From Tubulanus polymorphus (Eukaryota; Animalia; Nemertea), in the NCBI RefSeq assembly GCF_964204645.1, contig NC_134036.1:1302001-1366000 (forward strand): a DNA stretch of 64,000 nucleotides, in the 5' to 3' direction. Both the position numbers and the translations under genes were made by a program. Within the stretch, counting starts at the first letter, position 1; each line of letters begins with the position of its first letter. Positions 11,954 to 53,900 of the stretch are shown one piece after another. Below the pieces are notes generated by a model, which was not told the DNA's origin, ran no database searches, and worked only from the letters and a program-made list of their open reading frames with translations.

Positions 11954-12500
11954 CAGTGTAATAACTCTGAAGATCGAATTTAGCTCTCATAGTTACCTCC
12001 TGGATCGCAAACTCTCAAAATCTGATATTTCAACAAATATATTTTGATAACTCTTTTTACATGTTGATTTCTAGTTTAATTACACGTGCAAAATATCAAT
12101 AAATTCTTGCGATATCAATTTAACACTTGATGTAAAGTAAATAATTCTTCTAAACTCTTGCGTTATTTTAACTCAGCTTAAAATAATATTGTTTCATTAA
12201 AATAAATCATGTCTCTGACATTTTTGATTTAATCATATTCCATTTTAAATTTCACTTTGTCCATTGACAATAATGTTTTCTCGTCTAAAATGATAATAGA
12301 TCCATCTTATCCGATAACAATAAGTTCTGTCTCGTACCGCTTTGTTACCTTAAATTTAATCATATCGCGTATTGTCCATCGATAATCGCCACAGTTTCGA
12401 TATCGGAAACATCATGGGCTGAATGAAAATTGAACCATTGTATTTCGTAAAATTAGAATACAATGACAGTTGACACAACCCGCTGTAGAACTTATGAATC

Positions 12501-13442
12501 ATGAATTCAACGCGGGATTATCAAATTAGGCAAGTGAATTACCTGACGTTGGTGAATAAGTCTGCGAGCTACCGAACGTTTTCGATCGTGTTTCTGACGC
12601 TGTTGTTCATATTGGGAACTTTCGGAAACGCGGCTACGTTCCTCATAATGATAAGTCGTAGATTCCGCGGTTTATCGTACGCTAACTATCTGATCGTTTT
12701 GTCGCTTAGTGATTTCCTGTTTTGTTTTAACCTAACGGCCCTGCCTGTTGCGCGGATCGCGCTTTGGCGTCTAGGCAACGGCAGGGTTTTGACAAATTCG
12801 CTGATCGGTTGTAAAATTTACGCATATTTCAGTAGTTTCGTAGTCTGCAACAGTTCGTGGTTTATAGTAACGATAACTCTAGAACGTTTGGCAGTTGTGC
12901 TCTTCCCGATTACAGCTCGTTTGATATGTACACCGAGATTTGCGCGATGCGTTATCGTCTGCATTCTAGCCGTCAACGGGATTTTATCGTACTTTTCCCC
13001 TTTGATGAATTCGTCTTTCGCAGACGATATCGGCTGTTACTATATAATCACCTCCCGACACGCTACCCTCTTTATTGTGTTATTGATTTACTTGTACATC
13101 ATACCGTTGATTATGATTATAACGTCAAATGCTGTCATTATTGTACGGTTGCTATTCACAAAATCTGTGATAACTTTGTCCGATTGTCAGAAAACTGCGA
13201 AATCAAAACGTACAACAATAATGCTCGTTACCGTTTCGTTAGCGTTCGCGACGTTTACGCTTCCCGATTCGATTATTGCGTTTATTCCGTGGATACCTTT
13301 AAAATTCAAAAACTTTCTATTTGATTTGTTCAGCAATTTCCAAATTTGTAATTACGCGATAAATTTTTACATATATATTTTTCTGGGACGAGAAATTCGC
13401 GAATATTTCTGCGCTAAAATTTGTTGCGTGGGCAAAAACTAA
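12501..13442 (+). CDS. Intronless class A (rhodopsin-like) GPCR, orphan peptide or chemosensory type
   Basis: 313 aa with seven hydrophobic segments. TM1 GN, TM2 LSLSD, Cys at the top of TM3 (GCKIY), ERL in place of DRY, TM6 FTLP, TM7 NYAINFYIY, and a C-terminal Cys cluster. Confidence 0.93.
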   Translation: MNSTRDYQIRQVNYLTLVNKSASYRTFSIVFLTLLFILGTFGNAATFLIMISRRFRGLSYANYLIVLSLSDFLFCFNLTALPVARIALWRLGNGRVLTNSLIGCKIYAYFSSFVVCNSSWFIVTITLERLAVVLFPITARLICTPRFARCVIVCILAVNGILSYFSPLMNSSFADDIGCYYIITSRHATLFIVLLIYLYIIPLIMIITSNAVIIVRLLFTKSVITLSDCQKTAKSKRTTIMLVTVSLAFATFTLPDSIIAFIPWIPLKFKNFLFDLFSNFQICNYAINFYIYIFLGREIREYFCAKICCVGKN

Positions 13443-15091: not shown

Positions 15092-16727
15092 TGAATATAT
15101 TTGAGCTTGAAATTTATAAGGAACCGCAAAATTTCATGGGACCCCTATATGATAAACATACTTAACGTTTATTTGTAATAAAAGATTTTTACATGGCAAT
15201 GTAAATACGTTATTCAATGGATTATGTTTTGAGTATTTGCTGTCTCACCATCTATCTGCTTTCAAGAGGCCATTTCAATCTGGAATGAGCATAATCTAAA
15301 ACCTCAGGAGAATATTTCCTAAAAACGCTAGCTTGTGGTGATCAGGAAGAAATTGAGCTGGAAAGCTAAAAAAATAAGAATTTTGGGACTTGTTTCTTGG
15401 CTTCCCGGATTTTTCTTTTTCGCCAAGAGCAAAGAATTGCTTGAAATTTGTGTCATGCTTCGCAGAGTCCCCAGAGTTTTCTGGTCATTTGAATATATTT
15501 GAGCTTGAAATTTATAAGTGACCTCAAAATTTCATAGGACCCCCATATGATAAACATACTTAACGTTTATTTGTAATAAAAGATTTTTACATGGCAATGT
15601 CAATAAGTTATTCAATGGATTATGATTGATTATGTTTCGACTGAGCATTTGCTGCCTCGCCATCTATTATCTCAGCATCTGCTTTCAAGAGGCCGTTTCA
15701 ATCTGGAATGAGCATAATCTAAAACCTTAGGAGAATATTTCCAAAAAACGCAAGCTTGAGGTGATCAGGAAGAAATTGAGCTGGTAAGCTAAAAAGAAGA
15801 ATTTTGGGACTTGTTTCTTGGCTTCCCGGAATTTTCTTTTTTGCCAAGAGCAAAGAATTGCTTGAAATTTGTGTCATGCTTCGCAGAGTCCCCAGAGTTT
15901 TCTGGTCATTTGAATATATTTCAGCTTGAAATTAATAAGGGACATCAAGATTTCATGGGACTCCTACATAATAAACATACTTAACGTTTATTTGTAATAA
16001 AAGATTTTTACATGGCAATGTCAATACGTTATTCAATGGATTATGTTTGTCATCTTCTGATGAGTATTTGCTGTCTCAGCATCTATCTGCTTTCAAGAGG
16101 CCGTTTCAATCTGGAATGAGCATAATCTAAAACCTTAGGAGAATATTTCCAAAAAACGCAAGCTTGAGGTGATCAGGAAGAAATTGAGCTGGTAAGCTAA
16201 AAATAAGAATTTTGGGACTTGTTTCTTGGCTTCCCGGATTTTTCTTTTTCGCCAAGAGCAAAGAATTGCTTGAAATTTGTGTCATGCTTCGCAGAGTCCC
16301 CAGAGTTTTCTGGTCATTTGAATATATTTGAGCTTGAAATTTATAAGGGACATCAAGATTTCATGGGACCCCTATATGATAAGCATACTTAACGTTTATT
16401 TGTAATAAAAGATTTTTGCATGGCAATGTCAATACGTTATTCAATGGATTATGTTTGTCATCTTCTGATGAGTTTTGCTGTCTCGGCATCTATCTGCTTT
16501 CAAGAGGCCGTTTCAATCTGGAATGAGCATAATCTAAAGCCTTAGGAGAATATTTCCAGAAAAACGCTAGCTTGTGGTGATCAGGAAGAAATTGAGCTGG
16601 AAAGCTAAAAATAAGAATTTTGGGACTTGTTTCTTGGCTTCCCGGATTTTTCTTTTTCGCCAAGAGCAAAGAATTGCTTGAACTTTGTGTCATGCTTCGC
16701 AGAGCCCCCAGAGTTTTCTGGTCATTT
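15092..16727. repeat. Tandem repeat, four copies of a ~400-420 bp unit
   Basis: Units begin TGAATATATTT(G/C)AGCTTGAAATT at ~15092, 15490, 15911 and 16319, and end GAGTTTTCTGGTCATTT. Copies are highly similar. Confidence 0.95.
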
Positions 16728-17248: not shown

Positions 17249-20200
17249 ATGTACCATGAAAGAAACATCTTTCGTTTTTTGCTCTTGTTCATTCTATGTT
17301 TATTCATCAGAAACACATCGGGTGAGTTTAATCAAAATCCACTGGTTCCAGAGTTGTTAAAATGTAGAAATTATTAATCTGCTATGATGACAAACCCTAA
17401 AGGCAAGCCCAGAAAGGTGCCATCAGGATCTAAGCCAATCGTTGTTGCGGGTGGAAAGCTCAGAGAAGAACTACAGAAAGAAACTATGTCACTGTCACGA
17501 TTCAAACTATCAATTGTCGGGGTTGGAGAGCTCGGAGAAGAACAATATTTGGATGTTTCAAATAATCTTGTTTTTTATTTTGTCATTTCAGCAAAATGTT
17601 TTGGGAAGAGTTGTATTGGTTGGGAGTGTCATTGCAGTACGCCCCAAAATAAATGTCCAATAAGGGACCCAGAAAGCGCTTTAACATGTCAAACTCCTGG
17701 TACCTGTGAGTCTGCATTTTGGACTGGACCAGCTTGTCAAATCGGTAAGTTTCCTGTATTAACTGTTTCTGCTCCAGTAAAACGAGGTCAAATATCACTG
17801 AACCTCGGATTTATCTCAGATTAACGGATTAACTCAATATTTCGTGCGAAACGGCTCTCATTGAAATGCCCATATAAGGGAAAACGGAAATAGATCCAGG
17901 AATTGCCGTGACTAAAGGTGACACTAATCCGTATACGGATTAACGTCACTAATCCATAAGCGGGAAAAAATCTATTAGTAAAAATATCATAGATTTATGA
18001 AATATCTGGGAACTGTCGACGAACTGAGATCAACTCTAATTATTTCATCGAGTAAAGAAAAAAAAATGTTAGTTTTGTTTAATTCTAGTTGAAATTGTGA
18101 AATAACTTTGAATCAATTTGTGTTTGTTCGTTTTGAAAATTCGTGAAATAATTTAAATCTTCTATTCACAAAATGTGTTTTGTAGGAAACGTGGCTCGTG
18201 GTAAAACAGTTACAATGTCATCCACTCACTCACCCGCTATTAAATGTACAGATGGTCAGACGGTAACAAGTGGTGGTCGTGAAATATGTCACACTAATTT
18301 GGATCAAGACGCCTGGATTAGAATTGATCTCGGAACTCAATACGTGGTACATGAAGTTACACTTTGGGATAGAACAGACGCGACGAGCTGCGACCAGCCG
18401 TGGAGTGAGTACATATTATCATTTTTGATATCATTTATTATTTAGAAACCCTACAGACACCACTGAGGTCACATTTATACTCAACTTTATCAAAAGTAAA
18501 TCAACCAAGGAATATAACTTTGAACTCGAAAAGATTTTTTGAGAATATAGTTTAATCAACCGATTTTCAGACTGTAAATTTGGAATTTACTTTTTCAGTC
18601 GAAAACAATTGGTTTTTACATCTGATGCAATCACGAAATTCTTCCTTGAACTTTCCTCTATTTTATGCTCGATTTCTTTATTTCAAAAATGTACGTATAA
18701 TTCATTTTGAAGGTTCTCTATTTTTTTCTTTTCTCAGAAAAACGCGCGCGCAACCTGGAGATTCGAGTCGGAAATAACCCGAGTATTTTTACATCTAACC
18801 AGAAATGTGCTTACCATGGCCCCGCTCTCTGCGGAACACATAAAACATTAGCATGCAGCCCAGGTCCTATAGTTGGTCGATACGTCACCGTTCAACACAA
18901 GAACATTAGTAAGGCAGAGTATCTCAACCTGGCAGAAATAGAAGTTATCGGGTTCAAATATATCGGTTAGTTTTGCGATTGGAACTGAGAGAGTATGAAC
19001 AAGATTATCAATTTAGAAAGGAATATTCAGTGAATTTTTAATGAGAATTTACCTAACAAATTTGAACGAATAAGTTGTATTTTTGAAATAAGAACTCCTT
19101 TTTACGTGTCACGTGTAACCGTTATTTCTGTTCAACGAATATTAGTTTTTTGTATCACCATTAGATTTCTGTTTTAAATTTCTGTTTAGCACCCGGTGAT
19201 TGTAGTAAGGGATCGAACTCATTTGGATGTATGATTGAATGTAGATGTAACAACAATAGTGAAAGTTGTGACTATTTGAGTGGTATCTGTCAATCTGGCT
19301 GTTCACAGAATTACATCGGAAAGTGGTGCGAGTCAGGTATATTACACTGAATCATAGATTCCTGGGAATCTCACTCCTTATTCCCTGAATATATTAACCA
19401 ATATGAATCGGAAAAGATACCAATTGAAAATGACCGAAAGTAAAGGATCCTTACCCTTCATTTTATTTGATTTACCTGCAATCAACATCGATTTATTTTT
19501 TAGAATTGAAGTTGTTTTCGAATTTGACAAAATCTGCGCTGACAGATAACAGTGTTAATGTCAGTTGGACAGCTTACTCGGGTTCTGTAGTAGATTCAGG
19601 ACGTGGTACTGTCAGCGTTCAGTATCAAGTCGTTTATCGTAAGATATCAGAAAACACTTGGACTAATCAGGAATCTGCAGGAGTCCTTACACATCACACA
19701 ATTACTGGTTTAACTCCTAATACCGAGTATAAGATAGCTGTTAGTCTACAGAAATTAGTTAACAGTCAACTTATATCAACTGCGAGTCAAACTAGTCCAA
19801 TACTAAATATACAGACTTTGTGTGCAGGTAAAAACCCTTCATTCTTATAAACTCTTAAATCACCAATTCAAACACAGAATTGTGTTAAACATGTTTGTTT
19901 TACTGTAGTTCTATTAAACAGTGCTAAAGATGTTCGTGTGGTGCTGCCGTCACCAAGAAGATGTCGATTCGTATTTTATAAGTAATTTGTCTGTCGTGTC
20001 ATTTCAGTACCAGGACCTCCCGCTTCTCTTGACTTCTCATTCACAAAAGATACATTGAAAACTACATTGACATGGACCGCACCAAACAGTCCAAATTGTG
20101 ACTTCATCAATTATCGGGTAGGAATTAACTGGTCCTGATCGGTAGAGGGCACCACCTGCGCTATACTGTAACGTGTCCCTATCTGTTTTCAGCTCACGTG

Positions 20201-23200
20201 TGAACCCATCAGTACAACTTCCACAACACCTTTAACAGACATAAAAACAATCAACAAACCTAAAATCAAAGGCTCCATCACAACTTTAGACATAACGACG
20301 TCACTGATACCTTTTACTCAATACAACTGTTCAATTTTTGCTTTGAATAGTATAGGCGGAGGCTCGCCTGCCAGTGTTAGCTTTTGGACAGGTTTGTAAT
20401 TTGAACACAACGACCTCAAGTTTCCACTGATGTCACTTGTCAAAATTGTCACTTACTGATATTTCAGGTGAAATAACAATTCCCCTACTGGTTGTCAAGA
20501 AAGCAGCGGTAACAGACACGACTGTTACACTTCAAATAACGCGTGTTAACACTGGTAACATCACGTAAGTGTCCTCTTATTTTCATCTATAAATACCGCA
20601 TGATCTTATAAAACAATTTTTATCTGATTTGCAGCGGTTACGAGGTGATCGTGAAGAAACACAATGGACCAATCAGCCGTCGCCGTAAGCTTACAGTCAA
20701 CCAATCACAGTACGTCTCGTACGAAGAAGCTAAACAGCGAGGATTATCAGTTTATATTACTGCAGTTCTACCACCGGAAGTGCCCTCTGAGTTTATAGTT
20801 GGTGATACGCGTAACTATAGTGGTTACTTTAATGCTCCTCTAGAAACTGGGAAATCCTACAGTTTTATTTTAGGAATCATTGAGAATTATAACGGAGTGA
20901 GTTCATCTTGTCTATCAATACAAATTGTAGTTTACAATTTAAAAGCCTCAAGCCTTCTCTTCTCATTGTCTAGCAAACGTTTTGGCATTATCCCCCAATA
21001 GAACAGCAAGAGCGAATCATTGTTAAAGCACCGTGGAGTATTGCATGGATGATAATAGGTGGCGTTGGAGCAGCTCTTCTCACACTCTTATTGATGGCTG
21101 TTGTGCAAGTAATAGTAAGGAGGTACGAGTGAATAGTGGTGACCTCTATAATATTTCATCAGTTGACGATCGCCCCCTATTCACCAAACCCCCTCATTCA
21201 GTTACCCAACACTAATGGACACCTAAACTTTTTCAAATTTTGCAGACGCGGTGGGTGCAAAACTCGACAAACGTCGAACAATGCAGATGTATCCATGGAG
21301 AATATTCCACCTTCCAATGAAAGTATTGGTAAAGCTTTGGAAAGACTGAAGAGTGTCCCGGGGGAAGAAAATGCGAATCAGGAACATACAGCTCATGTAA
21401 ATTCTTCAAGAGCCGTAGAGGAAACTTACTTGAATCGTTCTCAATCATCAACAGAAGGAAATACAACTCATGCAAATTCTTCAAGGGAAGTAGAGGAAAC
21501 TTACTTGAATCGTTCTCAATCATCAACAGAAGGAAATACAACTCACGCAAATTCTTCAAGAGAAGTGGAGGGAACTTACTTGAATCGTTCTCAATCATCA
21601 ACAGAAGGAAATACAACTCACGCAAATTCTTCAAGAGAAGTGGAGGCAACTTACTTGAATCGTTCTCAATCATCAACAGAGGGAAATACAACTCACGCAA
21701 ATTCTTCAAGGGAGTTAGAGGCAACTTACGTGAATTGTTCTAAATCATCAAGAGCAGGAAATACAACTCACGCAAATTTTTCAAGGGAAGTAGAGGGAAC
21801 TTACTTGAATGGTTCTCAATCATCAACAGAAGGAAATACAACTCACGCAAATTCTTCAAGAGAAGTGGAGGCAACTTACTTGAATCGTTCTCAATCATCA
21901 ACAGAAGGAAATACAACTCACGCAAATTCTTCAAGAGAAGTAGAGGCAACTTACGTGAATTGTTCTAAATCATCAAGAGCAGGAAATACAACTCACGCAA
22001 ATTCTTCAAGGGAAGTAGAGGGAACTTACTTGAATGGTTCTCAATCATCAAAAGAGGGAAATACAACCCATGCAAATTCTTCAAGAGAAGTAGAGGCAAC
22101 TTACTTGAATCGTTCTAAATCATCAAGAGCAGGAAATACAGCTCATACAAATTTTTCAAGGGAAGTAAAAGTAACTTATTTTAATCGTTCTAAATCATCA
22201 AAAGAAGCAAAAACAGCTCATACAAATTCTTCAAGGGAAGTAAAGGCAACTTACTTGAATCGTTCTAAATCATCAAGAGCAGGAAATACAACTCATGCAA
22301 ATTCTTCAAGGGAAGTAAAGGCAACTTACTTGAATCGTTCTAAATCATCACGAGAAGGAAATACAATTTATGCAAATTCTTCAAGAGACGTGGAGGCAAC
22401 TTACGTGAATTGTTCTAAATCATCAAGAGAGGGAAATACAGTTTATGCAAATTCTGCATTATCAAGAGGTTTGTCTGGTGAATCTTGTAGATTTTGAGAA
22501 GTTGAAACCTAATTTGTTTTATGATTTTTCTCCATTCCATATAGAAAGCTCCGGGTATATCAATATCTATGAAGATGGAAATGCAGTAGATGAATCGCAA
22601 GATGATGAGGATCATCACTTCGCTTCTAAAGGTGCTACTATGATTTGTGACCTGTTGGGAGACACTTTGATTAAGACCTCTGATAATTGGAAGAATATGA
22701 ATAAAGAATTTCAGGTAGAATCGCCGTGAGGTTGGGACTGCGCGTTGGTAAGACATGTGTTTATGTTCTGGATCTATTTTGTCTTTAGGGTGTTCTCAAG
22801 TTGAGACGTGGATTGAGCGAGTGCGCTGGGAAAGTGGAAAATGTTGAGAAAAACAGCTTTCCAAACATGTTGGCCTGTAGGTATTGCCAGCTCATGACGT
22901 TGACATCAGTTTTGTTATTTAAATGAACTGCATTGTGATATAACTGTATTACTTTATGTCATTCCACTGAGTTAATGTTGTGTTGTCTTTCTAGATGATT
23001 CGACTAGAGTTGTTCTGGAACAAACCGGTGAAGAACCAACATCAGATTACATCAATGCCAACTATATTTGGGTGATAAATCAATCCCTCTCTGCTCTTGA
23101 AAATGTTGCCACGTCCTCCTATTGTATATAAACAGAAATTCTTGTTTTCTTTTTCAGGGACTAACTGGTCATGTGATATGCATTGCTTGCCAGGGTAAGT

Positions 23201-25840
23201 CTTAATAACTTTCCAATAATCTATAATATGCTACTTTGGCGCTCATGGAAGTTGCTCTTTCAGCTCCATTGCCATCTACATTCAATGACCATTGGCGGAT
23301 GATTTGGCAAGAGAAATGTCCGGCTATTATTGTACTCACAGATCTGACTGAAGGACAAGACAAAGATAAGAAGGTATGTCAATACTAGCAGAGGTGGTCC
23401 TGTGTACACAGTCAAAAAGTATAAAAGTGTCTTTTCATATTCCAATTGCAGGTGAAGTGTCATTCATATTGGCCAACAAAACTGAACACGAAAGGTCGAT
23501 ATGGAGATATAACAGTAAAAGTTGCAAAGAAAATGGAAAAACACACTGAGCCTCCGGCAGTGGTTCATTTCCTATCGATTAAAAAGGTGATGATCAACCC
23601 TCTTGTTTTACCATTAGTGACCTAATTGTTGGTATTCATGTTACTGTTGCTATCTCTATAAGTTTGGTTCCGATATCGATTTTGACAACATGCTGTCGAG
23701 GCTCTGTTTTGATACCTTGCATCACATCAGTATTATCTATAACCTGCCTCTCTCTCGATGAGTAACGCTGGATTTACTTTATAGCGTGGCCACAAACAAG
23801 CACATAAACTATTACTGTTCCAATATCGAGGATGGCCGGATCATGGTGTACCGTTCCCGGCTTTATCTGTTGTTCGTATGCAACAGTTCATCAAACAGCG
23901 TCTTACCGACCCGGATCAGGGACTTGTGCTGGTTCATGGCAGGTAAATTAATTCGAAAATCTTCCAGTCCTTTACTGCTAAGGAGACGTGTAGAAATGTT
24001 ATGGCTTGTTTTGTGTTCCCAGTGCTGGTGCTGGAAGGACAGGTTGTTATATCGCAACGGAGCAGCTTCTTGAAAAAGCTAAGAAAGATGGACTCGTTAA
24101 CGTATTCGACATGTTTAGGAAACTCCGTCAACAAAGACCAGAAATGATCCAAAATATGGTAAACCTTAATGTGGCAAATGTCTCTCATTTCACGCTTCCA
24201 AAATCCAAAACTTCTCAAACATGTTGTTTTATTAATATTCCCTGCAGAAACAGTACATTCTCGTGCACCAGATTCTACTGGAGGAACTGGTACTGGGACC
24301 AGTGGCATACCCGACCAGGAGTTTCAGAGAATCATACGAGGAAAGAAAGGCAACGCGCCCTGTATCTAGAAACGTGTCCGACAAAATAGAGGAACAATTT
24401 CTTGTACGTATTAAGTTCGTCCAAAATGAGACGAAGGTTTCGATCCTGGAACAAAAATCTGGATGGTAGCAGTGAACCATTGACCAAGTTAAACTAGAGA
24501 CTAAATCGTTCCTCCTTATGGGTCCTAATTGTTTCATCTTGGTTTGGTTTTGAGGGAAACAATTTTTTCACTGAGCTTCTATTAATACAGGTGTTGAAGG
24601 CATCGGCTCCGATTCAGGACGAGGAATCACTAGCAGTGGCCAAACTACTCAACAATGTTTACAAGTCTCGATACGAAGACATCCTTCCCGAGGCACAGTA
24701 TCAACCGCAACTCTCACATAAAGGGTTCATTAATGCTTCATTTGTGCACGTGAGTTTGATTATGATTTCATAGCTATCCGTAGAATATCCGGGCAGATCC
24801 GGTGGAGGGACATTATGACTCGATATTCTTCTGTCGAGATAAGATGTAAGAATCTGACTGATGTAAATACTTTCTTTTTTACAGACGATCACAGATGACA
24901 ACGTGTCTATAACCACACAAAGTCCAATGCCAAACACAATTACTGACTTCTGGCAAATGATCTTTGACTATAACTGTGAAATTATTGTGATGATGCATCA
25001 AGAATATCCACAAGATCCGGTAAGGCTTACTCCTATTCTAGGACTGCCTTATCTAGATGTCTCCTAAAATACATCTTCTGATTTTAGACATATGCAAGCT
25101 ACTGGCCTGCAGCTGGAAGCATCAAATGCAGTCCTTTTACAATCACTGTGGAGGAAGTTTCATTACTCTGTAAGACCATCGTTCGTCGGGATTTGACCAT
25201 CCAAAAACAGAATGTATGTTGAGTTTAATATTCTCGATAGCACCTTTTCAAAGATAGGTGGCTGTATTTTTCGGAATTTCCTTCGACATTGCTATTTACT
25301 ATGACCTGATCAGATCAATTGTATTTCTTTGATTTCACAGGAATCGCATCTGATTCGTCAGATCCAGTTTTTAGGATGGCCTGAGGATGAGTCAGTTCCT
25401 GATTTACAATATCTATTCGAGTTTGTGAAGTTAGTTACAAGAGAACACGTCACCAGTCCTATTGTTGTACATTGCATGTTCGTATCTTAGCAACATCAGT
25501 CAATTATTTAAAACAACATTACACATTTTAACGATTATGCAAATTTTGAAGGGACAGCACAACGAGAACAGGGCTATTTTGTGCGGCATTTGAACTGATC
25601 TCCAAGGCGCCATCTAGCGAAAAAATCGACATTTATCACTGTATACAAAAACTACGAATGACTCGACCTCAATTCATTCCAAATTTGGTAAGAAATTTAT
25701 CGATTTCGTAGTAGTTTTTACAAGAAATTGCATGGATGTATTTTTCTTTTTTTTTTTATTTATAGGAACAATACAAGTTACTGCATGAACTGGTGATATT
25801 GTATTTACAAGGACACGACACTTATGTGAACCTTAGTTAG
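17249..25840 (+). CDS. Gene A: F-type lectin / EGF / FN3 receptor-type PTP-like protein (D1 Cys-to-Gly pseudophosphatase) with a 14x cytoplasmic Tyr repeat
   Basis: GT-AG exons in consistent phase: SP 17249-17321; EGF 17592-17744; FTL 18186-18404 + 18738-18965 (H-x26-R-x-D); EGF 19190-19336; FN3 19504-19827; FN3 20008-20117 + 20193-20391; membrane-proximal 20468-20564 + 20635-20896 ([17 protein letters not shown]); TM 20974-21122; repeat exon 21246-22468. D1 motifs [48 protein letters not shown]2 motifs [26 protein letters not shown]. Ends DTYVNLS*. Confidence 0.9.
21380..22455 (+). repeat. Coding minisatellite, 75 bp x 14 (25-aa unit [25 protein letters not shown])
   Basis: First TYLN and last TYVN codons are 975 bp (13 x 75) apart and the frame is open throughout. 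Confidence 0.97.
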
Positions 25841-30164: not shown

Positions 30165-41377
<11,213 letters not shown>

Positions 41378-43224: not shown

Positions 43225-46200
43225 ATGTATCGTGAAAGAAACATCTTTCGTTTTCTGCTGTTGTTGATTCTGTGTTTATTCATCACAAACACATCAGGTG
43301 AGTTAATCAATAATAATTCATTGGTTCCAGAGCTGTTGAAAACGTGGAAATTATAGATTTGACGATTTCAAACCTTAAAGTAGACCTCAGAAAGATGCGA
43401 CAAGGAAAAGTCTGTCACTGTCAGGATTCAAACTATCAATTGTCGGGGGTGGAGAGCTCAGGATGGAGCGACATTTGGAGAAGGGCATTTTAGGATAGGC
43501 AAAAAATGTTGTTTCTGTGTTTGTTATTTCAGCGAAATGTTTTGGGAAGAGTTGTACCGGTTGGTTGTGTCATTGCAGTAATACAGCTTTGAATGTGTGT
43601 CCAATCAAGGGTCAGAATATAGATGGCGCTTTAACGTGTCCAAATCATAACACTGCATGCGAGTCTACAATAAAAATTCCATATCTTTGACTTTATAATG
43701 CGACGTGAGTTATTGCAGATTCAAACTATAGCTATGTCACAAATATTTGCAGGTTGTGGCTCTAGGTAAAAAGGGTTGGGGACCACGGAGTGAAATTGTT
43801 TACTTTTTGGCGCAAGTCGGAAGTAAGTTAAGGCCTTTTTTTAATTAGTTGGAGCACGAATTTTTAAAGGAAGATTTTGGAAGGGTGAAGAAAAAAAAAA
43901 TTTAAAAAAATTTGGTATTTTATATAACAATGGAAGGGTGAGTGGGAAAAAAAGAAAATAAAAAAATCATTTTTCATTGCTATCTTATATACTAATGTGG
44001 AAGGAGAAACAATAAAATAAAAAAAAATTTATTAGCGGTGAGGTTGTTGACAGAACTCACTACTCGTCTGTCGTTCTCGCGATGCAACTTTCTCACGATT
44101 ACTTGGAAACAGAAAGTTTCCTCGACGGCGGTGGCGTTGGCGTGACCGGCCATTTTGTTGCCATACTAACAGCAGCACGAAACCGTCAAATTATTCAATT
44201 CAAATTCAAATCAAGTTCATTTTCATGAATAAGATGTCCGATGAGAGACAGAAAAAACAAAATTTGAATTTTTTTCATACAGAAATTGAATTTTAGGATG
44301 GAAGGCGGTCAAAACAAATATGAATAATTAATTATTTTACAAAATGTGCGAATTTATGTGGAAGGGCGACGGAGATAGAAATTAAAAAAAGGAATTTCCC
44401 AATTACCAAAATGACCCGAATATCGGCGGCGGATCCTTGCTCCAACTAATTTAAAGAAAAGGCCTAAGCAGTATCGTTGGAAATTTCAAATTCAAGGGAT
44501 CGTAAGTTAAAATCTATCTGTGGTGTTTATTTCAGTACCAGGACCTCCCGCTTCTCTCGACTTCTCATTCACAAAGGATACATTGAAAACAACATTGACA
44601 TGGATAGCACCAAACAGTCCAAATGGTGACATCATTAATTATCGGGTAGGAATTCTCTTGTCCAGACCTGTAGAGGGCACCACCTGTTCTATACTGTAAC
44701 ATATCTCCTATCTGTTTTCAGCTCACGTGTGAACCCATCAGTACAACTTCCACTACACCTTTATCAGACATAAAAACAATCAACAAACCTAAAGTCATAG
44801 GCTCCATCACAACTTTAGACATAACGACGTCACTGATACATTTTACTCAATACAACTGTTCAATGTATGCCTCAACTAGTAAAGGTGAAGGCTCACCTGC
44901 TTATGTATAATCCACGACCTCTAAAAACCAACGCAAATATCTTATCATTTGATAATCGTCCGATGCCCCCTAGTCACAGAAATACCCACTCACCGAGTTA
45001 CCCACAATTTCGACGCCTTTCTTTTCTTTTGCAGACGCGGTGGGTTCAAAACTAAAGAAGCATCGAACAATGAAGTATCCATGGAGAATATTTCACCTTC
45101 CGATAAAAGTATTGGTAAACCTTTGGCAAGATTGAAGGGTATCCAAAAACAGGAACATACAGCTTATATAAATTCTACATTTTCAAGAGGTTTGTCTATT
45201 GAAGCTTTTAGATTTTGGAAGTTGAAGCCTAAAAATGTTTTTTAACACCAAAGATTCTTCTCCACGTAGAAAGCTCCGTGTATTGCAATATCTATGATGA
45301 TCCGGAAACGCAAGATGGCGAGGATCATCACTACGAAATCGCTTCTAAAGGCGCTACTATGATTTGTGACCTGTTGGGAGACACCTTGATGAAAACCTCT
45401 GATGGATGGATGAATATGAATGAAGAATTTCAGGTAGAATTGTAGGGAGGTTGGGACTGCGCGTTGGTAAGGTTTACATTTTGGAACTCTTTTATCTGTA
45501 GAGTGTGTTCTCAAGTCCAGACGTGGATTGAGCGAGTGCGCTGAGAAAGGAGAAAATGCTGAGAAAAACAGGTTTCAAAACATATTTGCCTGTAAGTATT
45601 ACCTGTTCATCATGTTGATATACCTCATTTTATACCTGTATCTTGCCAGGTCATCGATCTTATTTATTTAGTGAAACATCTCTATTGTCGTATTATTGAC
45701 TTTTAAGTGTGGTGTTGCTTTTTTCTAGATGATTCGACTAGAGTTGTTCTGGAACAAACCGGTGAAGATCCAACATCAGATTACATCAATGCCAATTACA
45801 TTCGGGTAAGGAATCAATCCGCCTCTGCTCTTGAGAAGTTTTTGTCCTGTGCTTATAATCAATGTTGTTGTAGATGATATGGATATTCCATTTTCAGGAA
45901 ATGAAAAAATTAATTTCAGAGCTTGCCAGGGTCAGTTTTGTTACCTTTCTCATAATCATTTACAAAGTCAATTCAACTTTCTATTCAACTTTCTGATAAT
46001 GGATTTTTTTCATCGCATTTTGATCCTCATGTTGTCATTTCAGCTCCATTGTCATCTACAATCAGTGACCATTGGCGGATGATTTGGCAAGAGAAATGTC
46101 CGGTTATTATTGTACTCACTGATCCTACTGAAGGACAAGGCAAAGATAAGAAGGTTTCAAAGCAACTACTGAGTAAACATAAGTTTTTGAAAATTTTAAC

Positions 46201-50973: not shown

Positions 50974-53900
50974 ATGTATCGTGAAAGAAACATCTTTCGT
51001 TTTTCGCTGTTGTTGATTCTTTGTTTATTCATCATAAACACATCAGGTGAGTTAATCAATACTCATTGGTGTTTCGGAGCTGTTAAACTCTGTCACTGTC
51101 AGGATTCAAACTATCAATTGTCGGGGGTGGAGAGCTCAGAGAAGAACTACAGAAAGAAACTCTGTCGCTGTCAGGATTCAAACTATCAATTGTCGGGGGT
51201 GGAGAGCTCAGAGAAGAACTACAGAAAGAAACTCTGTCACTGTCAGGATTCAAACTATCAATTGTCGGGGGTGGAGAGCTCAGAGGAGAACAGCATTTGG
51301 ATGTTTCAAATAATCTTGTTTCTATCATTTCAGCAAAATGTTTTGGGAAGAGTTGTACTGGTTGGGAGTGTCATTGCAGTAATACAGCCGTGGACAAATG
51401 TCCCACAGAAGGTCAGAATATAGATGGCGCTTTAAAGTGTCCAAATCCTAACACTGCATGTGAGTCTACAGTAAAAACTCCATATCCCTGGACACCACCA
51501 GGATGGACCGGACCAGCTTGTCAAATTGGTAAGTTTTCCGTATCAACTGTTTCTCTTCCAGTAAACCGGGGTCAGGTCAAATATCACTGAACCTCGGATT
51601 TATCTCAGATTCAACCCCACTAATTCGTCACGTGAATTGGCTTTCATTGAAACGCCCATATAAGGGGAAAACAGATATAGAATCCACTATTGACTAAAAT
51701 GTCTGGGAACTGCAGCTGTCACTCAACAGACTGAGATCAACAAAATATTCTTCGCGTAAACAAAAATAATGGTTCATAGAAATGAAACATTTATTTGGAT
51801 TATTTTAAGATCGGTTTGATGTAGTTGAGTTGATTCTACACGTTTTGTAGGAAACGTGGCTCGTGGTAAAACAGTTACAACGTCATCCCCTTTTGCGTTG
51901 TATCCCGGTAGTAAATGTACAGATGGTCAGACGGTAAGTGGAATGTGTCACACTTTAGCGGATCAAGACGCCTGGATTAGAATTGATCTCGGAACTCAAT
52001 ATGTGGTACATGAAGTTGAACTTTGGGATAGAACAGACGCGGCTGATTGCGACGCTGAGTGGAGTGAGTACAAATTATTATTGTTTATTGTGTCATTGAT
52101 TATTTCGGTCAAATCTGATAGAAAATGAGGATGAAAAACTAGAAAAGACTTGTCAGATATGAATCCTGTTTTGACGAGCGAGAGACTTTTAAAATCGACC
52201 AATTTAGGAACCAAAAGTATCCTGAATTCCGTTCCACGTTTGGCTCGAGATAAATTGATACAGTTTTAACTCAAGAACAAAATTTCTAAAATTTTCACTC
52301 TTTCTTCCATTTCATTGTATATTATAACTGTGGAACTTTGGGTCATTATCATCCGTGAAAACAGTCAAAATACGTTGTTGGAAGATTTTGAATCGAAAAC
52401 AATGAATTTATCCTACTTCTTTTTTTTCTCTATAATTCTTGTCCACTTCTTTTTCTATAGAATTTGAATAGAATTATTTTGCATCCAAAGCAATCGACGA
52501 AGTTCTTCCATCAACTCCTTGGGTTTCATTATATTATTGACAGTTTTTACGAACATAATCTGAGATATTTCGCAGCTTTAGAATTTTCTTTGCAAATAAG
52601 TCCATCCGTTTTCAAACGAACTCGAAAAGAATTGTTCAGCAATCGATGAAATTCTCAACTTCCCTAAATTCCATGCATTATTTTCTGTTTTCACGGAATT
52701 GACTGCGACATTTCGAAACTTTTCGATATTTCGAAATTTCTTTTCTCAGAAAAACGCGCGCGCAACCTGGAGGTTCGAGTTGGAAATGAATATGGCAATG
52801 ATACACGCATTTCTACATCTAACCAGAAATGTGCTTACCAGGGCCCCCCTCTTTGCGGTACCCATAAAACATTAGCATGCAGCCCGGGTCCTATAGTTGG
52901 ACGATACGTCACCGTTCAACACAAGAACCTCGGTAAAGCAGAGTATCTCGCACTGGCAGAAATAGAAGTTATTGGGTTCAAATATATCGGTAAGTTTTGC
53001 ACAACTATATATGTAAAATTCAGAAATATAGAAGTATGAAAATAAAATGGATTTAGAAATTGTTAAAACTTGATTGTTCAAAAATATTCAGTGACTTGTA
53101 ATAAGAACTAAAAGGGATACCTTAAAAAATCTCAACAATTTTGTATTTTTGAAATGAAAATTATATCAAGTATCACCTTTTCTTCGTATCACCTTTAAAT
53201 GTTTGTTTAGCGCCCGGTGATTGTAGTAAGGGATCGAACTCATTTGGATGTATGATTGAATGTTATCCATGTTACAACAGTGAAAGTTGTAACTATTTGA
53301 GTGGTATCTGTGAATCTGGCTGTTCACAGAATTACATCGGAAAGTGGTGCGAGTCAGGTATGTTACATTGAATCATAGATTCCTTGGAATCTCATTCCTA
53401 GCTGTTCCTTAAATGTAGTTAGGGTGAATCGAAAGTGACCGAAAGTAGAATGCAACTTCATTATAAATTACATTTCATCTTGTTTGATTCATGTAAAATT
53501 AACATTAATTTCTTTTTTTCAGAATTTAAGTTATTTTCTCAATTAACAAAATCTTCGCTGACAGATAACAGTGTAAGAGTCGGTTGGACAGCTTACTCGG
53601 GTTCTGTAGTAGATTCAGGACGTGGTACTGTCAGCGTTCAGTATCAAGTCGTTTATCGTAAAATATCAGAAAACACTTGGACTAATCAGGAAACTGCAGG
53701 AGTCCTTACACATCGCACAATTACTGGTTTAACTCCTAATACCGAGTATAAGATAGCTGTTAGACTACAGAAATTAGTGAACAGTAAACTTATATCAACT
53801 GTGAGTCTGACTAGTCCAATACTAACTATATGTCCAGGTAAAAACCCCTCATTCTAATAAACTCTTAATCATCAATTCAAACACAGAATTGTGTTAAACA

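Follow-up and report, generated by a model that had tools for sequence, protein, structure and literature searches.

Grb2-type SH2 domains need an asparagine at position +2 of their phosphotyrosine ligands. Transmembrane adaptors of the LAT/LAB/LAX type present multivalent pYXNX sites to the Grb2 SH2 domain (PMC3291652, PMC9629719), and in LAT three YXNX sites set Grb2 valence and govern aggregation (PMC3291652). Receptor protein tyrosine phosphatases (RPTPs) can also carry the motif: Y789 of PTPRA recruits Grb2, which provides a precedent for pYxN docking on a receptor of this class (PMC7959691), and R3 RPTPs bear a C-terminal YxN (PMC5336234). We analyzed a 64,000-nucleotide stretch of the genome of the nemertean Tubulanus polymorphus (assembly GCF_964204645.1, contig NC_134036.1, positions 1,302,001 to 1,366,000 of the forward strand), referred to below as the window and used for all coordinates, in which four paralogous receptor genes, A to D, are found. 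Gene A, whose features all lie on the + strand, contains a coding minisatellite at 21380-22455 composed of 14.3 copies of a 75-bp unit, which encodes 14 units of 25 amino acids that each carry T-Y-x-N, together with two YAN motifs. The array is an expressed, cytoplasmic part of a receptor with two protein tyrosine phosphatase (PTP) domains, and we put forward, as a tentative proposal, that it serves as a phosphotyrosine docking stretch.

Tandem Repeats Finder reported the array with 90% matches, 0% indels and a score of 1569, and it is open in only one of the six frames, the + frame of 21247. In the 407-codon translation of 21247-22467 there are 16 YxN motifs, 14 of which are TY(L/V/F)N, one per unit, while the two YAN, one in unit 14 and one in the partial unit behind it, arose where His became Tyr. 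An initial annotation of the window had given the same repeat and the same motif count, and its counts for the corresponding exon in the paralogues were likewise recovered, with one YVN in B, one YIN in C and only HAN in D. Composition shuffles of the exon gave an expected 1.9 YxN and a maximum of 8 in 5000 shuffles against the 16 observed, and a shuffled single unit has a YxN with P = 0.12; the excess is due to the copying of one motif-bearing unit, and 16 independent events are not involved. Aligned with itself, the consensus unit scores highest at shifts of 33 and 42 nt (37/75 matches versus a null 99th percentile of 34), which supports an older half-repeat of 11 + 14 amino acids inside the unit, THANSS versus TYLNRS; the two half-repeats of the initial annotation are thus upheld, but not the 12-13 amino acids that it assigned to each. 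At the amino acid level T3, N7, S9, R10, T15, Y16, N18, S20, S22, and S23 are invariant in the 14 units. Y16 shows a single synonymous TAC-to-TAT change, position 17 is L, V or F, and position 19 is R, C or G. DNA and protein searches found no second copy of the array in the animal's own genome, the one other protein match being weak (E 0.003, C4), and no Pfam family matched the 407-amino acid repeat exon.

To place the array in the transcript, short Logan contigs from four runs (X1-X4) of a single study, covering two samples of the organism, were placed on 19400-25300. As the contigs of X2 skip 11 GT..AG introns, X2 was taken as RNA; X1, X3, and X4 also contain unspliced pieces. One X2 contig (record 11) joins 21122, the end of the transmembrane (TM) exon, to 21246 and continues into the first repeat unit with 0 mismatches, and another (record 13), of which 67 letters fall within the last unit, links 22468 with 22545 and has 1 mismatched letter on gene-A-specific sequence. 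Both joints are GT..AG and have the phases predicted from the sequence. Within the array, contigs from X1-X4 span the internal unit junctions 21967-22117 and 22111-22252 with 0-1 differences, which speaks to these local junctions only and not to array length. No exon-skipping joint 21122|22545 was present among the joints listed, three further joints being undisplayed. Because the X2 contigs join the repeat exon in frame to both the TM exon and the next exon, the array is transcribed, spliced in frame, expressed and cytoplasmic. The initial annotation had placed the repeat exon after the TM exon, on the cytoplasmic side, and had named removal by splicing or an extracellular position as outcomes that would speak against its reading; the joint 21122|21246 and the topology of the protein agree with the former, and neither of the latter was found.

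The exons on either side of the array reveal that gene A is a type-I receptor with a signal peptide, an F5/8-C lectin domain, EGF-like and fn3 modules, one TM helix, a juxtamembrane linker and two PTP domains; for this account, all searches of domains, PDB structures and the genome were run one exon at a time. Exon 1 (17249-17321, with its 3' boundary placed by the GT donor) is signal-peptide-like, with a basic n-region, an 11-residue hydrophobic core and NTSG, and has conserved counterparts at 30165 (B), 43225 (C), and 50974 (D). The ectodomain comprises F5/8 type C (discoidin/lectin-like) exons at 18152-18967 (open-frame bounds), where PF22633 (E 1.4e-6) and PF00754 (E 5e-4) matched 18152-18442, and a Cys-rich, EGF-like exon at 19165-19347 (open-frame bounds), which was recognized from the Cys pattern of its translation and to which Pfam gave no match. 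Three fn3-type modules are spread over several exons at 19434-20929, which include the RNA joint 19827|20008; fn3 matches were obtained at 19434-19847 (E 1.1e-8) and 20172-20396 (E 1.3e-3), while the last, membrane-proximal module is Fn3_PTPRU-like (PF23144, E 1e-12, 20612-20998). The TM exon (20974-21122) encodes a helix at 21034-21117 followed by Arg-Arg, its donor at 21122 being confirmed by an X2 joint and its 5' boundary predicted. The predicted intron before this exon, 20930-20973, has a length of 44 bp versus 69-198 bp for the RNA-confirmed introns and is absent from the joints displayed. The juxtamembrane exon that holds the repeat (21246-22468, joints 21122|21246 and 22468|22545) has 408 codons when its split codons are included and begins with RRGGCKTR. 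It is followed by an acidic linker exon (22545-22714, X2 joints 22468|22545 and 22714|22789) that contains Y-I-N-I-Y-E-D and leads into the first PTP domain, D1. From the repeat exon through the end of D1 all exons are open and in phase. Thus, the array is cytoplasmic, between the membrane and D1, as indicated by the signal-peptide exon, the ectodomain Pfam matches, a lone TM helix with RRRGGCKTR after it, and the downstream PTP domains. We regard this part of the account, the receptor architecture and the in-frame splicing of the array, as close to certain.

This arrangement resembles that of LAT in that gene A is predicted to be a single-pass protein with several YxN motifs in a low-complexity cytoplasmic stretch near the membrane, 16 in the repeat exon and one in the next, and in that valency would decide cross-linking. 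The composition of the array is on the disordered side, as would suit a LAT-like scaffold, but AlphaFold2 (AF2) models disagree with disorder. Unlike LAT, gene A has 16-17 sites rather than three, these are near-identical minisatellite copies, and they belong to a protein with two PTP domains and a large lectin/EGF/fn3 ectodomain. No homology to LAT, LAB or LAX was found in a phmmer search of 1.84 billion representative proteins, and the resemblance is therefore one of proposed working and not of family. Like PTPRA and the R3 RPTPs, gene A combines an RPTP-type receptor with Tyr-x-Asn, but in those receptors the YxN is single and C-terminal to the PTP domain or domains, whereas in gene A it is juxtamembrane and repeated 14-16 times. 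Membership of the R3 subtype was considered and rejected, as R3 receptors have one PTP domain and an fn3-only ectodomain, while gene A has two PTP domains, lectin and EGF-like modules, and its motif before D1.

D1 is encoded by eight exons at 22789-24403 and was identified from PF00102 on 22976-23128, PDB matches to RPTPs, its WPD loop and X2 joints, with the intron 22877-22994 inferred from sequence only. The PF00102 match scored 21.1 bits versus a cut-off of 20.9 on one 51-amino acid exon. In the PDB searches the P-loop exon matched PTPRE (E 1e-16) and lay nearest the D2 domains of PTPRE, PTPRS, LAR, and PTPRA, while the WPD exon lay nearest PTPRU (E 8e-6), with PDB 6sub as its best match. 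PTPRU is itself a pseudophosphatase receptor. Across the RNA-confirmed joint 23942|24023 the P-loop of D1 reads VHG|S-AGAGRTG (23935-23942 and 24023-24046), such that Gly (GGC) takes the place of the catalytic Cys, with WPD loop, P-loop Arg and Q-loop retained. D1 thus lacks the catalytic Cys of the HC(X5)R signature of classical receptor PTPs, and gene A is therefore a PTP-like receptor with a pseudophosphatase D1, a point that the initial annotation had not linked to the array; the missing Cys also sets gene A apart from PTPRA and the R3 receptors. Because of this replacement, the gene A receptor is unlikely to remove phosphate from its own linker. D1 could instead act as a phosphotyrosine binder by analogy with STYX, a pseudophosphatase with the same Cys-to-Gly substitution in its active site (PMC8622459), although STYX is of the dual-specificity type and D1 is a classical PTP domain within a receptor. 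Gly occupies the position of the nucleophile in 16/17 readable paralogues, TGC (Cys) being present only in L036 on another contig (G000:C10 near 9380130), which indicates that the family expanded after loss of the nucleophile. The second PTP domain, D2, spans approximately 24591-25710, with the RNA joint 24403|24591 at its start and splice sites beyond 25300 that were read from the letters alone. It has a WPE loop and an atypical P-loop, VHC-M-DSTTRTG (25470-25600), in which the Cys and Arg of CX5R are kept, and is probably of low or altered activity.

The origin of the repeat unit is seen more clearly from the other members of the family. The exon after the array matches 19 places in the 268-Mb genome, most of them clustered on the same contig, which gives a family of at least 19 members. 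The initial annotation had contrasted the array with three paralogues; the difference in motif number stands, while the family is larger than the four genes it considered. Gene A is the only expanded copy among the at least 19 paralogues. The juxtamembrane exon could be found in 17 of the others, where its start precedes the next exon by ~235-265 bp, as against 1300 bp in gene A. Nine of these 17 contain exactly one unit, with the acidic site EEAEAVY(V/E)NC followed by ENTASAN, and the remaining eight contain the second half-unit only, with Y, H, F or D where His stands. As the unit is present once in family members, gene A has amplified 14-fold a pre-existing, ancestral 25-residue linker unit that already bore an acidic Tyr-x-Asn. 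At this site Y and N are kept in 9/9 single-unit paralogues while the intervening residue varies between V and E. A second motif in the following exon (22545-22600; compared with the same exon in L019-L035), Y-x-N-I-Y-D-D-P, combines YxN with a YxxP-type site. Most of the 19 paralogues conserve it, and it reads Y-I-N-I-Y-E-D-G in gene A and Y-Y-S-I-Y-D-D-P in D; the 22545-22714 exon thereby adds one further YxN (Y-I/F/C-N-I-Y) in A, B, and C. The sequence RRGGCKTR directly after the TM helix (21246-21270) occurs in gene A only, with RGGFKT in 17/17 other paralogues, and its Cys is a candidate palmitoylation site that would parallel the palmitoylated, membrane-proximal Cys of LAT. In paralogue C (~44700-45200) an fn3 exon nearly abuts the juxtamembrane exon and there is no counterpart of 20612-21122 of gene A, which encodes the Fn3_PTPRU-like module and the TM helix; C may thus lack a TM helix or be a pseudogene.

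Comparison of the units with one another indicates how the array grew. Units 4-5-6 differ from units 7-8-9 by 1, 3, and 3 mismatches, respectively, or 7/225 bases, which identifies a 225-bp higher-order duplication and shows growth by both unit-wise and three-unit unequal exchange, the latter recent. The initial annotation had argued for unequal crossing-over from interspersed variants, and rightly so, as the variant units 5, 8, and 14, which read YVNCSKSSR, are real and units 4-6 were copied as 7-9. The edge units differ by 12-20% from the other units, a value close to that separating gene A from its paralogues here, which indicates that the array is of similar age to gene A and that its turnover continues. 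The array therefore has the characteristics of a coding minisatellite, with head-to-tail 75-bp units, an unbroken frame and signs of unequal exchange. Short motifs are known to be multiplied by coding repeats elsewhere: the 48-bp variable number tandem repeat (VNTR) in exon 3 of DRD4 carries SH3-binding motifs, and the 54-bp coding VNTR of PER3 multiplies CK1 sites. In Helicobacter pylori, the CagA protein has variable EPIYA segments (PMC5408210). Like these repeats, the array of gene A consists of in-frame units in a region of predicted disorder with a motif in each unit and a copy number changed by unequal exchange. Unlike in these cases, the motif is YxN and the repeat lies in a PTP-like receptor.

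Based on these results, we tentatively propose, by analogy with LAT and PTPRA, that the array offers multiple phosphotyrosine docking sites and that the number of its units determines the valency, a reading to which we give somewhat less than an even chance. Genome-encoded tyrosine kinases, of which a Src-family and a Csk-like locus were found, would phosphorylate the tyrosines of TYxN, SH2 adaptors that require Asn at +2 (Grb2 type) would bind the phosphorylated sites, and copy number would set the valency of gene A at 16-17 sites versus 0-2 in its paralogues. As D1 is dead, the receptor would leave its own sites phosphorylated. The genome contains at least 46 SH2 matches together with Src-family (L037), Csk-like (L006), Crk-like (L038), and Nck-like loci. 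The Src-family locus is of the myristoylation type, and the Nck-like locus is an intronless SH3-SH3-SH3-SH2 frame at G000:C9:1151275-1152804. An improbable extension of the docking proposal makes gene A a 'ligand plus reader', with a 16-valent pYxN array beside a substrate-trapping D1. Dead D1 domains on neighbouring family members would then bind the phosphorylated array in trans, as would SH2 adaptors, leading to membrane clustering or condensation with a threshold derived from copy number, and the gene-A-specific Cys would add raft targeting. On this reading, the valency series of a lineage-specific group of lectin receptors would be written in the genome.

A number of observations weigh against docking, and several of them suit equally well a near-neutral minisatellite expansion of a disordered linker by replication slippage and unequal exchange, tolerated because nothing but the frame matters for the domains that follow. 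The YxN count would then be a by-product, and the expansion, if it does anything, would only lengthen by ~350 residues the flexible tether that separates the membrane from the PTP domains. Signs of constraint on the motif are weak: the units show a ratio of non-synonymous to synonymous differences (pN/pS) of 0.74, at ~1.1 non-synonymous variant states per codon Y16 and N18 would both stay unchanged by chance with a probability of ~0.1, and the juxtamembrane exon diverges at a rate similar to that of the flanking introns (74-84% versus 65-77% identity). The central blocks are young, with the 7 differences in 225 bases given above, and the 8 invariant nucleotide columns are close to the Poisson expectation of ~6. 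Expansion occurred in a single copy among at least 19 paralogues, and no homologue of the array was found among the 1.84 billion representative proteins, where phmmer returned 31 matches with a best identity of 29%; those inspected were unrelated tandem-repeat proteins with at most 29% identity over long stretches. A feature search of the ESM Atlas likewise found no homologue, its scores of at most 0.81 being uninformative. The motif itself also counsels caution, as YxN has just two fixed residues and, in the units, Thr at -1, whereas Src-family kinases favour Ile, Val or Leu at this position. E13, the acidic residue at -3, is replaced by Lys in units 11-13. At the His position of the HAN half-site, family members have Y, H, F, D, S or N, so that the two YAN motifs are probably incidental. 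A clear Grb2-type SH3-SH2-SH3 locus was not found when SH2 and SH3 matches were crossed, a comparison made exon by exon, so that this blank is weak. Finally, the beta stack of the AF2 models, if formed, would bury the array tyrosines. Two points speak against neutrality: the 12-20% divergence of the edge units implies that the array has persisted without a stop or frameshift, which selection on the downstream domains alone could explain, and the amplified unit is the sole part of the linker with an acidic YxN conserved in nine paralogues. On balance, we consider near-neutral expansion of the linker to be a serious possibility and almost as likely as docking.

Other explanations set the tyrosines aside altogether. 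The stretch might be a cluster of Ser/Thr phosphorylation or O-GlcNAc sites in which the tyrosines are secondary, as 172/407 residues of the juxtamembrane exon are Ser, Thr or Asn, S9, S20, S22, and S23 are invariant in the 14 units, and an S-x-x-E (CK2-type) and an R-x-x-S (basophilic-kinase-type) motif can be read straight from each unit, with the CK1 sites of PER3 as a precedent; these consensus motifs are, however, less specific than YxN, and the single-unit paralogues have Pro or Ala at several of the Ser positions, which makes this explanation unlikely. We give slightly less credence still to a folded, curli-like beta-solenoid with two strands per coil, which would form a rigid cytoplasmic rod of ~7 nm with internal ladders of Tyr, Asn, and Ser, and in which the tyrosines would be no kinase substrates. 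AF2 run without an alignment did predict strands of 6 and 12 residues per unit with a predicted local distance difference test (pLDDT) score of 70-83 and a predicted template modelling score (pTM) of 0.66, and one register of the long strand would put V12, A14, Y16, N18, S20, and S22 on one face with nearly all charges elsewhere. AF2 is known to yield unrealistic yet confidently predicted beta-solenoids for near-perfect repeats (PMC11795689), and the five models range in pLDDT from 54 to 70. Foldseek gave no significant match to the PDB, the best being the curli protein CsgA at E 0.6, and the i/i+2 conservation among unit columns was not significant (permutation p 0.36). In a charge-hydropathy plot the array, with 18% hydrophobic and 23% charged residues, falls on the disordered side, its mean hydropathy being 0.359 where the boundary is at 0.418, and the single ancestral unit would be unable to form the fold. 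Disorder of the array is thus more likely than a fold. The 39 N-x-S/T sequons in the exon versus 14.5 expected from shuffles, together with the invariance of N7, S9, N18, and S20, would suit an array that is extracellular as an N-glycosylated stalk, or that is removed from mature transcripts. Either is very improbable, as the X2 contigs join the exon in frame on both sides with no skipping joint among those listed, the array is preceded by the only TM helix and followed by the PTP domains, and the single-unit paralogues have 0-1 sequon. An N-glycosylated, mucin-like stalk was likewise rejected as a candidate, given that the sequon-rich part is flanked by the only TM helix on one side and by the PTP domains on the other.

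If the tyrosines of gene A are used, the family would offer a natural valency series of 0, 1, 2, and 16-17 YxN motifs on paralogues that are otherwise 75-90% identical, a series that must be engineered in studies of synthetic LAT, nephrin and other multivalent systems. It would also mean that a coding minisatellite can make a high-valency scaffold from one docking site within the lifetime of a gene family, here a set of lectin receptors that carry dead phosphatase domains and have undergone lineage-specific expansion. Should the tyrosines go unused, gene A would instead illustrate cleanly how a disordered juxtamembrane linker can tolerate growth by 350 residues, and would warn against taking the number of short motifs within tandem repeats as independent evidence of function.

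Further repeats are present in the window. A 408-bp x 4 satellite (92% matches) at 15092-16727 lies directly upstream of gene A. Gene D has, in its 5' part, a 72-bp x 2.9 repeat (51085-51291), to which a stretch of gene A at 17481-17543 is related. An intronless open frame of 314 codons at 12498-13439, which has seven hydrophobic stretches and resembles a G protein-coupled receptor, is located upstream of the receptor cluster.

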